A DNA stretch of 64,000 nt from Botryllus schlosseri (lineage: Eukaryota), in NCBI GenBank assembly GCA_051294905.1, contig CM119377.1:3844001-3908000 (forward strand), in the 5' to 3' direction. Below the pieces are notes generated by a model. It saw nothing but the letters and a program-made list of their open reading frames with translations. It was not told the DNA's origin and made no database searches. Every line of letters begins with the position of its first letter. Within the stretch, counting starts at the first letter, position 1. Made by a program: the position numbers and the translations under genes. Shown piece after piece: positions 14,410 to 42,098 of this stretch.

Positions 14410-14530
14410 CAGAGGTGGCCAACCCGCGGCCGTAGAAGGAAATTTGTGCGGTCGTCAACACGTAATTCAATTAGTATGTGTTGGCGGCCTTCGACCTCGA
14501 CAAGCAGATTGAATTTGCGAATTGACCGAT
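14410..14530 (+). mobile_element. 5' end of a Charlie-like hAT MITE family (second copy starts at 18223)
   Basis: CAG(A/G)GGTGG..AA...GCGGCCGTAGAAGGAAATTTGTGC...ACACGTAATTCA shared between 14410 and 18223. Confidence 0.7.
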
Positions 14531-15527: not shown

Positions 15528-18500
15528 CCATTATCTTTATCGACTTTTCCACAAGAGACTTGTATGTCGTTTCGTCTGCCATGTCAGCAACGATATATTC
15601 CGCTTGCGCAGCGCCGAGCTCAAGGCATTTAGCTGCGACCTGGACGGTAACACAAATTAATTCGGATATGTTCTGCCAGAACCAGTGTCGCTTGCTTATT
15701 TATTATTATTACTACGTATAAAATCATTAAGTGGTACCTTTCGCGTAAAATTCAATAAAGTTTGCTTATTTCAATCTTCATTGTTTGCTTGTGTACAATG
15801 CTAAGCAAGCGATAGTTTATGGGACTGCGGATGATAACTGTGAAGCGGATATTCTAACAAACCGATTCTGCATTGCGACAGTCCAGGCCAGTGGTTCCCG
15901 ACCTTTTTGGATCTCGGAGTCGCATTTCAAACTTCAGAGTACGTATGGAGCCACATGAAAACACTCAAGTAGGCTACTTATAACGAAAATTTAAAAGTAG
16001 CTAGCCTACCTCTGCGTCTCACCATCCAACTAATTCAAAGGCATTTACAGACATCTATATAGATCAGTGGTTCTCAACCTTTTTTTTTGACACGCCCCCC
16101 TTTTTGATAGTGAAAAATTTCGCGCCCCCCTCATCGTCATATTACAAAATCCAACTGGGATGCTAGCAACCCCACCAGATTGTTTGGTGGTATGGTCGGT
16201 TACGAATGTTGCTGAGAGAACAAAAAATATGAAATTCGGTCTATATAGAGAGAAACACGTCTGCATTGGAGGTAAATCGCGCGGAGCGCGAAAAATGTTT
16301 TCAGGTGACCGCTTCTTCGCGCCCCCTTCAGATGTTACACGCCCCCCCCCCCCCAAGGGGGGCGCGCCCCCCGGGTTGAGAACCCCTGATATAGATTCTA
16401 TATCGGTTATTTTTGCACTGACAGACGCAGATTGACGAGCGCTATATATTGAGATAAACTGAAGATGCATATCATTACTATCCAACATACTAGTATGCCG
16501 TTATGTAGTAGCTCTTCATACGTATTAGCACATTGGACTGCATTGCACATTGTAGAACTTTGTGGGCGATTATACGCTGAGTAATATTGGAATTATTTCA
16601 ATTTATAGTTGACTATGAGCCGTTATTTTTATGCTAGTAAAATTGAGTCGACATTTACTCTTCAGAGAAACGGTATATAAAACTGTATGGGTGTTCAACT
16701 ATTCATACATGCGTTTGACGCTAGTCTGCAAGAATTCTCTCTCCCGGTTTTCAGAAGCGGCCTTGGACGGCTTTAGATTTAACTAATATCCCACATTTTA
16801 GCGTTCATATACAGAACTTGACGTAACTATTCATAGAAACAAACAACAACAACTGTTTTCTATTATCATATTTCTGTCGCATATTTAGAGGTCAACCAGA
16901 GCCGCAAGATGGCTAGCTTGGAGCCACGGTTAGGAATCACTGGCCCAGGCTCACTTTCCATGCAAAAGATTTGGTCTAGCATGGTAAAGTCGTATCCAGC
17001 AGTGACAAATCTGTGTTTCAGGGGGGGTTGCGAGCAGGGTTTTCAAGCGTGTACATTTCCACAGCAATTTCAAGAATAGATTTACTCGTGAAGAACTAAC
17101 GACCTCATTCTTCGCATTAAATGTGTGAAATGATTTTCGTAATGTTAAATACTTAGCTTGCTGTGTTGTTTTTCCTTTTCAATTGCGTACACTTGTTGCT
17201 ACATTATATGCTCAAAGGGTACCCCATACATGCATATAAATCGAATTGGCATACGCAACTAAAGAAAACTTTGGGAACTCCTGATGTAGATCAACCCTAT
17301 CAGTTAGTGACTCTATTTTAAACATACGGCCACCCATCGCGTACCTTTTTCAAAACTTGCTCTCGACGGGCAGTGATGACAATTTTCGCTTCACGTTTAG
17401 CGTATTGGTAAGCGATTTCTTCTCCGATGTTTTGACTAGCGCCAGTTACAAGAACCTTTTTTCCTCGTATAGAACCTTTACCAGAAAATATATTTCTTAT
17501 GTTATCGTGCAATGGCAAAACAGACGCCATCTGAAGGCTAATGCAGCATGATCCTATCCATACAACCTACAGGTGCGAACTGCGGACTATGAGGCGTCTG
17601 CATTTCTACGCCGGGACACACCAATACATTTAAAGTTTCAGCCAAGATGCGATTTCGTGAAGTGAACTCCCAGAAAGATTAACGGCAATAAAATCTTTGC
17701 ACGAAATGACCGAGGCATGTTGGCCGAGACCTTCGATGTCTATATGTCCAGGCGCAGAAATTACCGGCCACGAATAATCCTGTCCTGGCAATGGGAGCCC
17801 GGCGACACAAATGCATAGCAAAATATTCCACACTGTTGAAAATGCAAATTTGGAATGCGTCTCGTCAAAGGATTTTTTCGTTTAGTCTGGTCTGGTACGT
17901 GAGAGGAATACCTTTACCTATATTTAGGTAGCGAAATCTTTACAGGATATCACGAAATAGCAGCATTCTTCGACAAAGTAACACATACCAATATGCCTGC
18001 CGGAAGCTATCCACCCAGAAACTCAACACACACCTGAAGTATTTTTACATCGTGTATATAAAGAGGATTTAGCTACCACCCATGGGAACACTCTGCAGGA
18101 CGGCAAATTATAGACAAAATATACAATTAAAAGCCGTCGAATATTTCGCGTACCACTTGAAAAGGTATCGGGTATACCACAAGTACCATGCATATCACAA
18201 TTTAAGAACCACAGGACTAGAGCAGGGGTGGACAAACTGCGGCCGTAGAAGGAAATTTGTGCAACCGTCGACACGTAATTCATAATAGTATGTGATGGCG
18301 GCCGTCGACACGGAAATTGAATTTACGAATTGACTCCCTAATGTTTGAGAGATTTTAATGAATCTTGATATTTTCTGAGCTCTTCGCGATTCAATGCGGC
18401 TTCATTTTCATCAGCTACGGAAACCCAATTAAGGGATTTCGTCTTGAAACAATTAAAGTCACAAATGTCGATTCAATGAATGAAAGTCCGTGGTCGAAAA

Positions 18501-19956: not shown

Positions 19957-22116
19957 ATGGAATTCGGAAAATTCGAAGGAATGATCTCGAAACTAAAACA
20001 ACTCGTTGCAGATAGCGACAGTAGCGATTCTAGCGACATGGAACAAACCAAGGAAATATCCGATGATGAAAAAGTTCTTGCAACACTTCGCCAACTTTAC
20101 GTCCTCAGTAAAGTGAGAATATTCAATGTGGCAGATCATATTGCAGCCGGTGAAGTAACAGAATCAACGCCGATTTCGGAGCACTACTCGACGGTGGAGA
20201 CACCCATTGCGGACTCCTGGGATTTTCGCTTAGGCGACATCGTCCGGATGAAATATGCCTTCCGGGACTTTAAGAATATACAATCATCTACAGTTGGCTG
20301 GAATACAAAACTCAGCACCATTCACGGCGTCGACGCCATTGTGACAGGAAGGTGGAGCTGTTACGATCATGTAATCGTGATCTATACACCATCTACGTTT
20401 TCGACAAGTCGTGTATATGCCGGACTCCTCGATAGAACCAAGCGCGGCGCGACTAATCAAGCAGTTACCGTTGAAAGACAATGGAGCGTGGACGAATATG
20501 TCATGTTGACGAAAGACTTGGCGGTGGTGGAAATTATGCAGCAACGCCTTGATATAATTCCTCGGAGATATCTTGGTAGACGAGGTAGGATCGTCGCGAT
20601 TACCAAAACAGCTGTAATCATGACGTTCAACGAGAGGACAAGTTTTTGCGTTAATTCACACTTGCTGTTGAAAAGCAATGACCAGAGTTCCCTCAGTACA
20701 GAAACAAGGTCACACGATGACTTTGCGATAGGAGAGACCGTCGTAGTAATAAGTGATATTAAAACACTGGTAAAGAACCAAAAAGGGTTCGGCGGATGGA
20801 ACGAATGCATGACCAATCTCGCAGGTAAAACTGTAAGAGTCATCCACATATGTAAAGACAACCGGCTTCGTGTACAGCACAAACTGGGATTGAGTTGGGA
20901 GATAAACCCGAAATCTGTGTATAGTTTGCATGATCCCGTAACGAAACAACAAACTAGTAACTATTTTGATTACATTTCGGGCGATGTCGTAAAAGTGAAA
21001 ATGTCATCAAGGTGGAAAAAATTGTTTAAAAGACAGAACATCCCTTACTCCTTTTTGTCATATTTGGAGTCCACGGCAGAAATAAAGGGAATCAACAAAG
21101 ATTTGTGTTATCTAATCACCTATAACAGAGGTCAGGGCGTCCCGATACATGAATCCAACATTCAAAAAGCAACTGAAAGAGAAAAAAGCCTTCAACAATT
21201 TATAAAAAACGATATCAAAGATATGAAACCCGGATCGCCGGTTTATCTAGATGTCGGTCCGCCACGTTTTGTCCAAGCGATACTAAGAGAGTGTAATGTG
21301 CATCGCGAAATAGTCGACGCGTTAACTAGGCCGTCCACGTTTATCGGATACGCACACGACGGTAAAGCAGTTATCCAATACCGAAATGGTAAGAGATACA
21401 AGATCAAGATTAACTATCTTACAAAACCCGAAAAATACGATGATCACGATCCTCCGGAAGGAATGGATTACGAAACGGCAAAGGAAGTGCAGAAAACAGT
21501 TGAGCGTTGTGTGAAGACGTTGTCAGCTCGCAACGAATCAAATGATTCCGGAGTCAAGCCGGTACAGTTACTATCGCTCTCTATAAACCCAACTCCTACC
21601 ATACATTTACGCGTGCAATCCGCCGGGGATCTACGCCGTGAGTTATCGGCGTTACTGGTGAAACAGTTCAATTGGGAAAGTACGTCGAAAAGTCGCGACT
21701 GCAGTGTATTTCACGCAAGAAAACTGCAGACGTTTCACAATAGGATCCGAATATCACTTCACTTTGATCAACACTCCCAATCGGACTTGGACGACATAGA
21801 ATTGGACAGGCACGAACCGAAACGAAATGAATGTGACACTTCGCGCGTTGTGTCCAACGCTGAAAGTTTGGTCGGAGCGGATCCCCGATTCAAGAATTTC
21901 AAACCTCCCGCTACATTGGAAGGTTTCAATTACTTACCTTTTCCTAGTGACGGAACGGGTGCTACTGTGTATATCCCATATTACGTTTCTGGGAGACTGG
22001 AACGTTCTGCCTTCAAAAATTTCGCGGAACTGCGGGACAAAATATCGGAGAAGTCACATAACATCAATGTATTCAATATAGGAAATATAGCGAATTTGAA
22101 TAATATAAATAACTGA
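19957..22116 (+). CDS. Intronless ~719-aa protein with five Mind bomb REP (SH3-like) repeats; no ZZ, ankyrin or RING domain
   Basis: Uninterrupted frame from 19789; first ATG at 19957 (acaATGG). Repeat 3, DFAIGETVVVISDIKTLVKNQKGFGGWNECMTNLAGKTVRVIHICKDNRLRV...SWEINPKSV, matches the recalled MIB1 REP pattern. Four more degenerate copies start near 20218, 20482, 20971 and 21223. Confidence 0.8.
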   Translation: MEFGKFEGMISKLKQLVADSDSSDSSDMEQTKEISDDEKVLATLRQLYVLSKVRIFNVADHIAAGEVTESTPISEHYSTVETPIADSWDFRLGDIVRMKYAFRDFKNIQSSTVGWNTKLSTIHGVDAIVTGRWSCYDHVIVIYTPSTFSTSRVYAGLLDRTKRGATNQAVTVERQWSVDEYVMLTKDLAVVEIMQQRLDIIPRRYLGRRGRIVAITKTAVIMTFNERTSFCVNSHLLLKSNDQSSLSTETRSHDDFAIGETVVVISDIKTLVKNQKGFGGWNECMTNLAGKTVRVIHICKDNRLRVQHKLGLSWEINPKSVYSLHDPVTKQQTSNYFDYISGDVVKVKMSSRWKKLFKRQNIPYSFLSYLESTAEIKGINKDLCYLITYNRGQGVPIHESNIQKATEREKSLQQFIKNDIKDMKPGSPVYLDVGPPRFVQAILRECNVHREIVDALTRPSTFIGYAHDGKAVIQYRNGKRYKIKINYLTKPEKYDDHDPPEGMDYETAKEVQKTVERCVKTLSARNESNDSGVKPVQLLSLSINPTPTIHLRVQSAGDLRRELSALLVKQFNWESTSKSRDCSVFHARKLQTFHNRIRISLHFDQHSQSDLDDIELDRHEPKRNECDTSRVVSNAESLVGADPRFKNFKPPATLEGFNYLPFPSDGTGATVYIPYYVSGRLERSAFKNFAELRDKISEKSHNINVFNIGNIANLNNINN

Positions 22117-22379
22117 GCTAAATATATTCTTGTTTATTGTAGATTAATAGAACCACTTATCTGGAATGATATGCCTATTCATCACTTGCCCGCCATTCGT
22201 ATTTTTATCTGCATGCATCTTTTTAACGCGTACTTCTGTTTGAATTAGTATTTGTGTATGAATATAGTCAAGGTGGGAATTTAATTGATCCACTTAACCG
22301 GATCGATTTTCTATAGTGTTCTATTCGGGTGAATTCCTACGCCTATGAGCTATAGCAGCATTGCAATATCGGTGTTCAA

Positions 22380-24028
22380 TAGGGTTGTCCAAAATTTGGA
22401 AAATCTCAAAAAGTCTCCGTGATTGTGTCTCATTCTATAGATTATTGATAAAAAAAAAAACAATTAGCCTGAAAGAAGCTTACAGGAAAGCCGTGAAGAT
22501 TTCGGTCAAAGCGTTTGAAAGTAGCTGCTCAAGAATGGGCGTGCCACTGACCATAGAACGGCGAGAAGACTTGTAATCGAATAACCACGGCTCTTGATTG
22601 GCTAATCGGCTATGCTTCAATGACCACGGCAGCAGCAGCTTGCTGATCAAGTGTTCAATAAGTCTGCTACCGGCGGGGATTCTGAGTGCGCATTGTTAGT
22701 AGTTTGGCAGGTGATGATTTAAGATTAATTCAGGACATGTTGAGGTACGAAATACATGATGAACAAACAACACCTGCTTCACAGAAGCTTTTACAGCATG
22801 ACTTCTTCATTGTGAAGGAAACGGCTGAAGCCTACATATCGTGTTTTCATCGAGAGAAAGCAAAGGCGGTTATGCAAGTGTTGAGCGAATTCACCGTTTC
22901 AGTACGGATCCACCATCAGTGAATACAAATATATAAAGCTTAACAATGACACTATACGTTGTGTGATCTTATTGGGCTTAAGCTGTAGTATATAGGTGAC
23001 GTTTTGAATGCTCTAGGGATCGGCGGAATCAGCCGGTTATGCTTGGCCCTTATCATGCAGATGCTTACAACAAATTGAATGCACTTGTAGGCGTTGTGAA
23101 AGTCCTTGATGATAACGCATAAAAGAGGTGGTAATGTACGCACTCTCGCACAGGCTGTGCTGGATATGGTATGTCAAAGTCCTTATTGATCCCGCAGAAA
23201 AGAGGTGTAAAGAAAAGCACAGACTATGCTGCATATAGTATCCAGCAGAGTTTGGATATCATATCCAGCATAGCCTGTGCTTACCTTAAACCTCTTTTCT
23301 GCAGCATCATTAAGGACTTTGACAACTCTTATAAGTGAATTCAATTTGCTGTAAGTATAACTGCCAAGCATAACCGGCCGATTCAGTCGATCCCTAGAAC
23401 CTTCAATGCTTCACTATATACTACAACTTGGATCCAATAAGATCACACATAGTATAGTGTCATTGTTAAGCTTTATATATTTGTATTCACTGATGGTGGA
23501 TCCGTACTGAAACGGTGAATTCGCTCAACACTTGCATAAGCGCCTTTGCTTTCTCTCGATGAAAGCACGACATGTAGGCTTCAGCCGTTTCCTTCACAAT
23601 GAAGAAGTCATGCTGTAAAAGCTTCTGTGAAGCAGGTGTTATTTGTTCATCATGTATTTCGTACCTCAACATGTCCTGAATTATTCTTAAATCATCACCT
23701 GCCAAACTACTAACAATGCGCACTCAGAATCCCCGCCGGTAGCAGACTTATTGAACACCTGATCAGCAAGCTGCTGCTGCCGTGGTCATTGAAGCATAGC
23801 CGATTAGCCAATCAAGAGCCGTGGTTATTTGATTACTAGTCTTCTCGCCGTTCTATGGTCAGTGGCACGCCCATTATTGAGCAGCTACTTTCAAACGCTT
23901 TGACCGAAATCTTAACGGATTTCCTGTAAGCTTCTTTCAGGCTAATTGTTGTTTTTTTATCAATAATCTATAGAATGAGACACAATCACGGAGACTTTTT
24001 GAGATTTTCCTAATTTTGGACAATCCTA
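22380..24028. mobile_element. 1.65-kb fold-back (palindromic) hAT-type element
   Basis: TAGGGTTGTCCAAAATT ... AATTTTGGACAATCCTA. Arms are near-identical over ~580 bp, then less similar towards the centre (~23230). GTGTTCAA lies on both flanks, offset on the right by TATA. Confidence 0.88.
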
Positions 24029-24179
24029 TATAGTGTTCAATGTCCTTTTAAAAAGATCGTATCTAACTGGATGAAAAAGCATGAATGAAAATGATTAGCC
24101 ATGCAGACTGACATTTCGCACGCATCATGAAAGTGTACGGATTGTGTGTTGTAAAATCTTGTCTCGGGTCGTGTGATTG

Positions 24180-26690
24180 CCAGATAGCAAGCAGTCATCA
24201 GCTGTCAAATCTATTGAGTATCAAAACTGAGCAAAGCTCGAAATCTTTTCCTAATACCAAATGCTCTCTCGAATTCAGCTGGACTCTGCCTGTGCTCGGT
24301 GGAGCACGACTTGAGTTTGAGATAGAGACGTGTCTCTGAATACCGTGGGCTAACTCAAGGCGTTAACCATTCCCTTTTTTACGGTTTGGCCGTGAATATA
24401 TTGTAGAAATTGCGATGTGGGCATATTTGGTGCCTGAATTCATAATTCCAACTGTAATATATAGCACTGTTATAAGAAGGAAATCATGTTCTAGCGCCGT
24501 ATGGCTTCATCGTTGGCTGCGTAGGCTATTCCCAAATCGGTGGACATTTTTCGTCAGAAAGGTTTGCGATGGATTCGCGAAATCGGTTAACGTTATATTT
24601 TATCATTTAATATCAAACGTAGCATATGGATATGTAGAAACGAATGGAGGATGAATGTTACCGAAAAACCACACAAGCTGTAGTCTACAATAGCGATCTT
24701 CCAATCCTAACAAAAACCGAATCCTCGGCGATGCGGACAAATGCAATGATGGTAGATGACCTGGTGCTTTATGAATGTACGCAATATTAGATCATTGCAA
24801 TACAGTTGATAAAACCGTCCGTCGCTGTGTATGGCGGAAATATCAACAACGCGGTACCAATACCCATCATCAGTAATCCAATAAATAGCTTGTGCTTATG
24901 CCTGAAGTCTGATGATTCATTATTTGAAAATATTTGCTTCGGCTACTACGGTATGCCAAATAGTAATGTTATTGATCGGTGTTATTTCGTCTATACATCC
25001 TGCGTATAATTCTAATATAATGTGTTGACGTAATTGAAGGCAATACTAGGCAACCAACATCACATCTAAACCCGCGGATTGCCAGATCGCGAGCAATTAA
25101 CAAAACCGCAGACGTCTGCAAGCAGTCATCAAGCTGTGAAATCTATCGAGTAAATACTCGAAACCGAGCAACGCTCGAAATCCTAACCGAATACGAAACG
25201 CTCTCTCGAATCGAGCTGGACTCGGCCTTTGCTCCGTTGAGCGCGACTTGAGTTTGCAACAGGGACGTGTCTCTGAATTAGTGCTTAAACTCATTTTGCG
25301 TCAACATTGCGTAAGAATCTGTATTCAGAAAGCGAGCCGAGAGAACGGGGCCCGTATTCAAGAAACCTTACTCAGTGCTCAAACTCATTTTGCGTCAACA
25401 TTGCGTAAGAATCGGTATTCAGAAAGCGAAGCGAGAGAACGAATTTGAGTTCGACTGGAGTCGAACTTGGCGCTCTTTTGAGCTCTACTTTTGTGGTTAT
25501 GGTATTAAATGACGACCTGAGGTTGGAGTCGATCTCGAAATGCGGCGTTTCAGCAAGCGTTTTCCGAGTCAAGCCGTGGGCAGACTCAAGGCCTTACTCA
25601 TTCCCTTTTTTACGGTTTGGCCCTGAATATATTGCAGAAATTGCGCTGTGAAGCATGTTTGGTGCCTGAATTCACAATTTCAACTGTAATATATAGCACC
25701 GTTATAAGAAGGAAGTCATGTTCTAGCGCCGTATGGCTTCATCGTTGGCTGCGTAGGCTATTCCCAAATCGGCGGACATTTTCATCAGAAGGTTTCCGAT
25801 GGATTCGCAAAATCGGTTAATTCCTCACAACGCTCTATTTTTTCACTTAATATAAAACGTAGCATCGGGATATGTAGAAACGAATGGTGGATGAATGTTA
25901 CTGAAAAACCGCACACAAGCTGTTGTCTGCAATAGCGATCCTCCAATCCTAGCAAGAACCGAATCCTCGGCGATGCGTACAAATGCACGACACGATGGTA
26001 GATGACCTGGCGCTTTACGAATGTACGGAATGTTAGATCACAGCAATGCAGTTGATAAAACCGCCCGTCCCTGTGTATGGCGAAAATATCAACAACGCGG
26101 TATCAATAGCCATCAACAGTAATCCAATAAATAGCTTAATTGTGCTTATGCCTGAAAACTTCAGGATGAAGTCTGATGTTTCATTATTTGAAAATATTTG
26201 CTTTGGCTACTACAGTATGTCAAATAGTCATGTTATTGAGCGGTGTTATTTCGTCTATACATCCGGCGTATAATTCTAATATAATGTGTTGACGTAATTG
26301 AAGGCAATACTAGGCAACCAACATCACATCCAAACCCGCGGATTGCCAGATCGCGAGCAATTAACAAAACCGCAGATGTCTGCAAGCAGTCATCAAGCTG
26401 TCTAATCTATCGAGTAAAGACTCGAAACCGAGCAACGCTCGAAATCCTACCCGAATACCAAACGATCTCTCGAATCGAGCTTGACTCAGCCTTTGCTCCG
26501 TCGAGCACGACTTGAGTTTGAGATAGAGACGTGTCGTGTTTCTGAATACGGGCCCGGGTCTGAGTTCGACTGCAGTCGAACGAGTCGACTGCAGTCGAAC
26601 TTAGAGGTCTTTCGAGTTGTACTTTTGTGGTTATGGTATTCAATGACGGTCTGAGGTTGGACTCGATCTCAAAATGTGACTTTAGAGCGC
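24180..26690. repeat. Tandem duplication of a ~1.2-kb unit (about two copies, with a thrice-repeated ~150-bp module)
   Basis: 24345-25115 matches 25570-26380; the gcaagcagtcatcaagctgt module occurs at ~24186, ~25118 and ~26382; local 65-bp duplication at 25280/25375. Confidence 0.85.
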
Positions 26691-40742: not shown

Positions 40743-42098
40743 TTAGACAAACCAATCTTTCAACTGGAACTCAAAGTCTTTGCAACGCGTCGAGCGTCGC
40801 ACCCATCTCCCGATGCTTTTTGCAGTGTTAGTGGCGATATTGTGAACCTTCAAACCGTGAATGTTCATACATGAAATGCACATATCTGGAATTTCGAAAC
40901 TTAAATTCAAAAATAACATTTGGTACTTCATAAATGGAAGTACTTCGGACAGTAACAGAGTGATGGTTATGGAATGATGTGATTGCGATGGAAATATGGG
41001 TGTGCTGATAGTCAAGAACTTACGTTCAGTGTCCTCACTGAACGTCACGCTTTGCAGCGAGGATGTGGCTTGTAAAGAATGCAGTTTTGAAGGTAACGGT
41101 AGCGTGCCTGACCACTTCGTCGCACTGACACCCGCAGGTAATGCACAGAATATCTTGCAGCACAGAAGTAATTCTGTCATTGGGCCTTTTTGAGTTTTTG
41201 TGAAGTTGTGATACATGGTAAACGGCAGCACCGTATCACTCGTGTCGACTTGATAATCTAGAACATGATTTAGTCCGGGATGTGACAAATGCGTAAATGA
41301 TGGTAAATTATTTTTCATATCATCGCCGTCGGTGAGACTGTGAAAACGTTTAGCAATCACATTCACTTTTCCAGATTGTCGATCAGAGTTCGAAGCATCA
41401 ACGATATTGTCTGACATTTTTATGTGCAGTTGCACCGGGGCATTTAGATAACTCTTTGAGCTCATCTCCCCGTTCAATCGAATATTGAATAGTTGACCGT
41501 CAGGGTTGATGACCACAGTAAGATGTTCGATCATATCCAGAAATACTTCATCAACAGCTTCCTTTTGCGATGCTAATGGTGCTTTTGATGCATCACCAGA
41601 TTTTACATATCGATTTTCTTTCGCTGTTTTAACTCCAAACAGATTATCTGGTATGAAATCAAAAGTTTTATCTTCTTCTGTAGCAGCAAGTTGTTTACAC
41701 TCATTAATGGCATTCTTGGAGACAATGCCCGGCTGACATAGTCCGAACGTTTTAATTATCAACTCATAGACGACAGCGATATGATTCATTATATTCTTGC
41801 TTGTGAGATCTCCTACAAGGTCCATGCATTCCTGGGTGAACTTTTTCAAGGATTCTACCATCAAAAAGCTTGCGATATATGGCGTCTCTAATGCTGCGAC
41901 CGTATAAACTTCACCCTCACTCGCATGTACGTAATACATGTCCTCAATTTTCATACATGGAGATAATATAGCGGTTGATAAGTTTTTTACGGCGTGTCTG
42001 TAAAAGATTTCGGGGTTCCATTTTTGTGTGGACGCCAGAAAACATTTTTGAGCAAGAATATCCCCGTCAGTGTTGATGATGAATATTCCGTTTATCAT
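40743..42098 (-). CDS. AP4M1: Intronless adaptor complex mu subunit, most similar to AP-4 mu (divergent), 451 aa
   Basis: Longin N-terminus MINGIFIINTDGDIL...EIFYR; AVVYELI; NLFGVKT...DASKAPL; EVFLDMIEHLTVVINPDG...GEMSSKSYL; FHS; LPF; RWVRR. The linker and MHD pattern fit recalled mu4 better than mu1/2/3. Confidence 0.8.
   Translation of the reverse strand: MINGIFIINTDGDILAQKCFLASTQKWNPEIFYRHAVKNLSTAILSPCMKIEDMYYVHASEGEVYTVAALETPYIASFLMVESLKKFTQECMDLVGDLTSKNIMNHIAVVYELIIKTFGLCQPGIVSKNAINECKQLAATEEDKTFDFIPDNLFGVKTAKENRYVKSGDASKAPLASQKEAVDEVFLDMIEHLTVVINPDGQLFNIRLNGEMSSKSYLNAPVQLHIKMSDNIVDASNSDRQSGKVNVIAKRFHSLTDGDDMKNNLPSFTHLSHPGLNHVLDYQVDTSDTVLPFTMYHNFTKTQKGPMTELLLCCKIFCALPAGVSATKWSGTLPLPSKLHSLQATSSLQSVTFSEDTERKFLTISTPIFPSQSHHSITITLLLSEVLPFMKYQMLFLNLSFEIPDMCISCMNIHGLKVHNIATNTAKSIGRWVRRSTRCKDFEFQLKDWFV

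Follow-up and report, generated by a model that had tools for sequence, protein, structure and literature searches.

A protein with five REP (SH3_15) units, encoded by a single ORF in the window (the whole 64-kb stretch of Botryllus schlosseri DNA that was analysed), is predicted to carry a nucleotidyltransferase fold in its C-terminus. The presence of this fold, and its joining to a REP array, is the new observation obtained here from structural models; a description of a REP array combined with a dead nucleotidyltransferase fold was found nowhere. The gene belongs to a small, fast-diverging family that is known so far only from tunicates, a range inferred from few named relatives. On balance, it is probably a genuine single-exon member of this family whose product is a lineage-restricted, soluble cytosolic scaffold or adaptor, combining a peptide-binding REP array with a dead nucleotidyltransferase docking module. 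The features of the gene are listed below by window coordinates and strand, followed by the residues of the predicted protein and the basis of each assignment.

19957..22116, + strand: complete coding sequence, a single ORF of 719 codons plus stop; termini align with full-length relatives
19957..20046, + strand: acidic, Ser-rich N-terminus (residues 1-30), predicted to be disordered; pLDDT below 50 and composition
20047..20148, + strand: long predicted helix ahead of the repeats (residues 31-64); model, pLDDT 60-90
20212..20436, + strand: REP/SH3_15 unit 1 (residues 86-160); Pfam 19.1 bits, below cut-off; hhalign 98.5% to canonical units
20476..20676, + strand: REP/SH3_15 unit 2 (residues 174-240); no Pfam match; hhalign 98.8% to canonical units
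20713..20931, + strand: REP/SH3_15 unit 3, the canonical one (residues 253-325); Pfam 48.7 bits; hhalign 99.5%
20962..21177, + strand: REP/SH3_15 unit 4 (residues 336-407); hhalign 96.7% to canonical units and 97.1% to unit 5
21220..21432, + strand: REP/SH3_15 unit 5 (residues 422-492); hhalign 96.7% to canonical units; joins unit 4 in the tree
21469..21771, + strand: predicted Pol-beta-type nucleotidyltransferase-fold domain, apparently without catalytic motifs (residues 505-605); model and fold searches
21922..21987, + strand: conserved hairpin motif of about 22 residues, F.Y..L....VY.PY.V (residues 656-677); family alignment, predicted beta-hairpin, pLDDT about 55-71
22057..22113, + strand: Asn-rich C-terminal tail motif (residues 701-719); kept in most full-length relatives up to the stop

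Coding sequence and REP units

The ORF extends from the ATG at 19957 to the stop codon at 22114-22116 without an internal stop. Only one other ORF in the 64-kb window reaches 150 aa, and the frame is therefore not a chance one; the coding stretch is slightly higher in G+C than its flanks and has a strong A-skew. From sequence, the frame is predicted to be a genuine, intact, single-exon gene, and retention of the tail motif up to the stop codon in relatives argues for the true end of the protein, with no further exon. No hydrophobic segment was present (maximum Kyte-Doolittle mean over 19 residues, 0.97); a soluble protein, cytosolic or nuclear, is therefore expected. A search of the 64-kb window against Rfam returned zero matches. 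A preliminary description of this DNA had reported an intact single ORF with an acidic, Ser-rich N-terminus, and both statements were borne out by the 719 codons without an internal stop and by the 11 D/E and 7 S found within residues 1-40.

Pfam recognised a single family in the protein, SH3_15 "Mind bomb SH3 repeat domain", with an E-value of 4e-17 and 62.7 bits for the whole protein. When the units were scored singly against the gathering cut-off of 24 bits for SH3_15 (PF18346), unit 3 reached 48.7 bits, unit 1 fell short at 19.1 bits, and no score was obtained for units 2, 4, and 5. The HMMER check for SH3_15 that had been proposed earlier was thus passed by unit 3, with the other four units below the cut-off or unscored, and Pfam used alone would give one or two repeats only. 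Profiles of each unit were built from the family alignment and compared using hhalign, both pairwise and against a canonical profile made from 74 SH3_15 units of unrelated proteins. Most pairs of units matched each other with a probability of 85-97%, and all five unit profiles matched the canonical profile at 96.7-99.5% over 57-72 aligned columns; two regions used as controls, one at the N-terminus and the other the C-terminal domain, both remained below 1%.

Among solved structures, sequence comparison matched only the REP regions of MIB1 (PDB 4tse and 4xi6), in which unit 3 aligned with both MIB1 REP units. An AlphaFold model of the whole chain, built from a shallow alignment of 25 sequences (mean pLDDT 74, pTM 0.59), contained five units with a common strand-helix-strand pattern at pLDDT 85-94. 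Its best fold matches in the PDB were the crystal structures of MIB1 MZM-REP and REP, followed by tandem SH3-like arrays such as the KOW domains of Spt5. By profile comparison and in the predicted structure, all five units are homologous to SH3_15; four are far from canonical REP, and unit 3 alone is close. The count of five REP-like units given at the outset was reproduced by the hhalign values of 96.7-99.5% and by the five alike units of the model.

Fold of the C-terminal region

The preliminary description had left a C-terminus of about 230 aa unassigned. This held for sequence methods, as Pfam run on 15 family members, a profile search against the PDB, and an Atlas feature search gave nothing usable, and the NTP_transf families had no sequence match to the C-terminal domain. 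It did not hold for structure, since a fold of the nucleotidyltransferase type could be assigned at residues 505-605. A separate AlphaFold model of residues 496-719 was calculated from a likewise shallow alignment of 15 family sequences, and its core at residues 505-605 (pLDDT 83-94) consisted of a helix, two strands, a helix, and three strands.

An exhaustive structural comparison was performed with this model using VIA in wide mode against 48,161 PDB representatives. Nucleotidyltransferases of the Pol-beta superfamily or their close kin made up nearly all of the 50 matches listed (Z 10.3-6.6), typically with alignments of 90-100 residues at 2.6-4 Å. Among the matches listed were CutA (Z 10.3), TdT (9.9), and GLD-2 (9.6), as well as Pol beta, Tailor, TUT7, URT1, Cid1, Trf4, and poly(A) polymerase; also listed were OAS, cGAS-like receptors, CD-NTases, GrpB, MenT, and the DZF domain of NF90/NF45. 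Foldseek against the PDB matched the C-terminal model to Pol lambda/beta with an E-value of 3e-4, and fold searches of the AlphaFold DB clusters and of the ESM Atlas independently gave the same nucleotidyltransferase answer. The Pol-beta-type nucleotidyltransferase fold of residues 505-605 is accordingly regarded as established, at the level of prediction, by four independent searches.

The sequence of the domain was inspected at the positions expected to be catalytic, using an alignment of 14 non-redundant relatives. No column of the core strands was conserved as Asp/Glu in these rows. The hairpin after strand 1 reads G-x-P-P-T in the family and N-P-T-P-T in the five-REP protein of the window; at the hG[GS] position (residue 544) G was present in 8 of the 14 relatives and N in the window protein, with PPT next and a shorter spacing to strand 2 than is usual. 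At the expected DxD site on strand 2 the window protein has T-I-H-L-R-V-Q-S, placing H550 and R552 at the two acidic positions; across the family, D was found at position 550 in 5 of 14 rows and R or K at position 552 in 11 of 14. A third carboxylate was not recovered either, no conserved acid being present on the later strands of the 14-row alignment. Only the small core lobe of about 100 residues was present in the model, which contained no C-terminal helical lobe. With no conserved acidic catalytic residues, no clear G[GS], and nothing beyond the small core lobe, the domain is most likely a pseudo-enzyme, as judged from the sequence alignment.

Two catalytically inactive modules, the NF45/NF90 DZF domain and the TUT4 Lin28-interacting module, serve protein-protein contacts and not catalysis. 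Both are alike to the window protein in having a Pol-beta-type fold, with Z 6.9 for NF90-NF45 (4at7) and Z 7.6 for TUT4 (6iw6). Both differ from it in keeping a second helical lobe, whereas the core of the window protein comprises only about 100 residues. There is no sequence similarity, and the comparison is an analogy only.

The nucleotidyltransferase fold is followed by a disordered linker, the hairpin motif at residues 656-677, and then the Asn-rich tail, which in most full-length relatives reads roughly [IV]xN[IVM][FHY]x[IL][GN]NxxN[LV]N. The tail is reminiscent of beta-arch assembly motifs, with the RHIM core absent. The core tetrad of a RHIM is [IV]-Q-[IV]-G, and a reading of the tail as a RHIM was rejected because this tetrad is not kept, the corresponding residues being FNIG in the window protein and HGLG, YNIN, and YGDG in relatives.

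Relatives and origin of the array

An exhaustive phmmer search was performed against 1.84 billion representatives. About 20 proteins matched the five-REP protein over its whole length, of which about 11 were full-length (700-770 aa), and all other matches ran through the SH3_15 units only. Most of the relatives came from Logan/ENA assemblies. The whole-length relatives were collinear from start to stop at 19-44% identity, with conserved domain cores and variable linkers across the set of about 20, and other Pfam domains at an E-value of 0.01 or less were limited to one weak Collagen match in the 25 aligned relatives. The combination of five REP units and a nucleotidyltransferase fold was not found among the large clusters of the ESM Atlas. 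In one Logan sample two paralogues were present, each as a single ORF on a contig of 3-4 kb with non-coding flanks.

The only named members were three "uncharacterized" loci of Styela clava, LOC120335007 (XP_039258451), LOC120331982 (XP_039255117), and LOC120331983 (XP_039255119), two of them with adjacent locus numbers. These are true family members, collinear with the window protein through the N-terminal helix, the five units, the nucleotidyltransferase-fold domain, and the tail, without a RING; they are 19-31% identical to it, and the model of LOC120331983 is shorter, at 441 aa.

Estimates of dN/dS were precluded by saturation of synonymous sites, the closest relatives being only about 42% identical; the sole near-identical pair, L005 and L006, had only four coding-sequence differences, too few for dN/dS. 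These differences (P0014/P0081; two runs of one project) were four clustered A-to-G changes within 320 nt, at L005 3047-3366, and all of them change a residue (K602E, E653G, D702G, and E708G), with zero synonymous changes. Allelic variation could account for them, as could A-to-I editing provided that the runs are RNA. An untrimmed Nextera mosaic-end adapter was seen at the start of two other Logan contigs (L003 1-19 and L004 1-18), with just 11 nt between adapter and start codon in L004, and these contigs may be derived from cDNA.

A tree of individual units contained cross-species clades for unit 1 (support 0.49), unit 2 (0.89), and unit 5 (1.0). Unit 3 formed a clade with support 0.91, apart from one outside sequence, and unit 4 had no clade of its own, falling into a joint clade with unit 5 (0.94). 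On this tree, the array of five units in fixed order predates the spread of the family.

SH3_15 arrays of 4-13 units were common outside Mind bomb, on kinases, Neuralized/ARM proteins, ankyrin proteins, and proteins of protists. Amphioxus proteins annotated as RIPK4/ANKK1 carry a kinase with seven SH3_15 units, and amphioxus NEURL1-like proteins carry Neuralized with 5-13; a kinase-REP protein was also present in one Logan sample. Among the further matches, five units were present on an ankyrin protein of a protist, about ten on a Paulinella protein, and four on MZM proteins. The amphioxus RIPK4/ANKK1-like and NEURL1-like proteins resemble the window protein in bearing a long SH3_15 array on a protein other than Mib, with a collinear multi-unit alignment to units 1-4; they differ in carrying a kinase or Neuralized/ARM part, and a nucleotidyltransferase-fold domain was not detected in them by Pfam.

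Mind bomb 1/2 consist of MZM, two REP units, ankyrin repeats, and RING fingers. They share with the five-REP protein the SH3_15 domain type, and MIB1 structures were the best whole-chain fold matches in the PDB; they differ in lacking a nucleotidyltransferase-fold domain. Of the parts that define Mind bomb, REP was present in the window protein, and MZM (MIB_HERC2 - ZZ - MIB_HERC2), ankyrin repeats, and the C-terminal RING were absent, with no match to MIB_HERC2, ZZ, ankyrin, or RING domains in Pfam. As three of the four defining parts were not found, the protein is not a member of the Mind bomb family. Hidden ligase exons were not found: tblastn of amphioxus and octopus MIB-type proteins against the 64-kb window matched the REP region of the five-REP ORF only, ten neighbouring ORFs contained no Pfam domains, and a RING-type Cys/His pattern was not found in any open frame across the window. 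Pfam likewise found no RING in the relatives, including the Styela RefSeq models. The absence of a ligase module stated in the preliminary description was therefore upheld by Pfam, tblastn, and the pattern scan of all frames.

The companion proposal, that the protein is a repeat-expanded Mind bomb derivative, was not supported, and neither was descent from Mind bomb by loss of the RING. Because SH3_15 arrays are widespread on other protein types, the five-REP array need not derive from Mib, and just one of its units is near canonical. In the unit tree the units of the family were scattered among other SH3_15 units and not placed with those of Mib, and an origin of the array from Mib was set aside, as the scatter gave no resolution.

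Possible function and surroundings of the gene

By analogy with the binding of the C-box of Jagged1/Delta by the MIB1 REP tandem, the REP array would bind short linear peptide motifs in one or more partners, and the dead nucleotidyltransferase domain, together with the hairpin and tail motifs, could form an oligomerisation or partner-docking module. With ligase, kinase, and membrane parts absent, the protein would act as a scaffold or adaptor and not as an enzyme, and an adaptor appears to be the most reasonable functional class for it. To our knowledge, a binding function of REP is known for MIB1 only, and REP (SH3_15) domains have hardly been studied outside Mind bomb. The family, together with the amphioxus kinase and Neuralized fusions, indicates that long REP arrays serve invertebrate chordates as a portable recognition module, and it offers a simple, enzyme-free protein for asking what REP arrays bind; it bears on no long-standing question at present, and being confined to tunicates it is of limited reach.

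Among the alternatives, it is unlikely that the protein is an adaptor of innate immunity or cell death, with a REP module as in the amphioxus RIPK-like kinases, a relic of an OAS/cGAS-like sensor, and a beta-arch Asn-rich tail for higher-order assembly. Kinase-REP proteins in amphioxus and in one Logan sample, cGLR, OAS, and CD-NTase structures among the fold matches listed, and a conserved C-terminal motif are consistent with such a role, as is the multi-copy, fast-diverging character of the family, with 42-44% identity in samples that include one with an AP-4 mu copy 88% identical to that of the window. The divergence-rate argument is soft, however, as orthology of these 42-44% identical relatives is not established, and poly(A)/uridylyl transferases and Pol beta are at least as close to the fold as cGAS/OAS. 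The domain consists of the N-lobe core alone, and the RHIM core [IV]Q[IV]G is not kept in the tail (FNIG in the window protein, variable in relatives). The same scheme in its tunicate-specific form, in which assembly would proceed through the hairpin and the Asn-rich motifs, is considered a little more doubtful still.

That the protein serves as a Notch-ligand decoy, its REP array binding the C-box of Delta/Jagged in competition with Mind bomb and so damping ligand activation, is very improbable. In MIB1, MZM is the part that binds the N-box of JAG1/Delta and REP the part that binds the C-box, and Drosophila Mib1 without MZM is dominant-negative in a REP-dependent manner (PMC11887331); unit 3, moreover, resembles both MIB1 REP units. 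Most of the ligand binding and activity of Mib1 is nevertheless carried by MZM, and flies tolerate the loss of REP alone with almost no harm (PMC11887331), which makes a REP-only protein, lacking this main ligand binder, a poor candidate for an efficient decoy. The widespread occurrence of SH3_15 arrays on unrelated proteins means that possession of REP is no pointer to Notch, and the family is restricted to tunicates, whereas Notch and Mib are pan-metazoan. The decoy model also has no role for the added nucleotidyltransferase-fold domain, a second module unrelated to Notch, and nothing ties the five-REP family to Notch ligands.

Slightly less credible again is that the ORF is a dead retro-copy or a passenger carried by a mobile element, in either case functionless in itself. 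The absence of introns, the repeats and fold-back element nearby, and the multi-copy nature of the family would fit. They are opposed by a frame of 719 codons that has been kept open and by conserved cores and termini with variable linkers in about 20 relatives. The ORF is not flanked by terminal repeats, either direct or inverted, and no element genes were found in the flanks of relatives in other species; on these grounds an origin from a mobile element was rejected. The neighbouring housekeeping gene, an AP-4 mu-like gene at 40743-42098 on the - strand (451 aa; Adap_comp_sub, E 8e-20), is also intronless. The earlier suggestion that the lack of introns points to retro-origin or intron loss is weak, because this neighbour is likewise a single ORF of 451 codons and the single-ORF form is common to the family across species.

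Least probable of all is an active nucleotidyltransferase that the REP array would direct to protein or RNA targets: the fold scores up to Z 10.3, with terminal uridylyl/adenylyl transferases as top listed matches, but a conserved DxD and third carboxylate are absent from the alignment, G[GS] is not clearly kept, H and R occupy the positions of the metal-binding acids in the window protein, no C-terminal helical lobe is available for substrate binding, and the NTP_transf families have no sequence match.

The best named match of the AP-4 mu-like ORF was from Styela clava (47%). The Logan sample SRR25569784 contained two AP-4 mu copies, 88% and 57% identical to that of the window, which indicates either two paralogues in that organism or a mixed sample. 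Repeated sequences were also noted in the window. A fold-back element at 22379-24029, which begins some 260 nt beyond the stop codon of the five-REP ORF, has arms of 545 nt that are 97% complementary and outer arms of 81 nt, and a tandem direct repeat of about 1.25 kb follows at 24221-26690 in two to three copies of 81-95% identity. Upstream of the ORF, a direct repeat of 60 nt (87% identical) occurs at 14410-14469 and 18223-18282 and is probably a dispersed short repeat.
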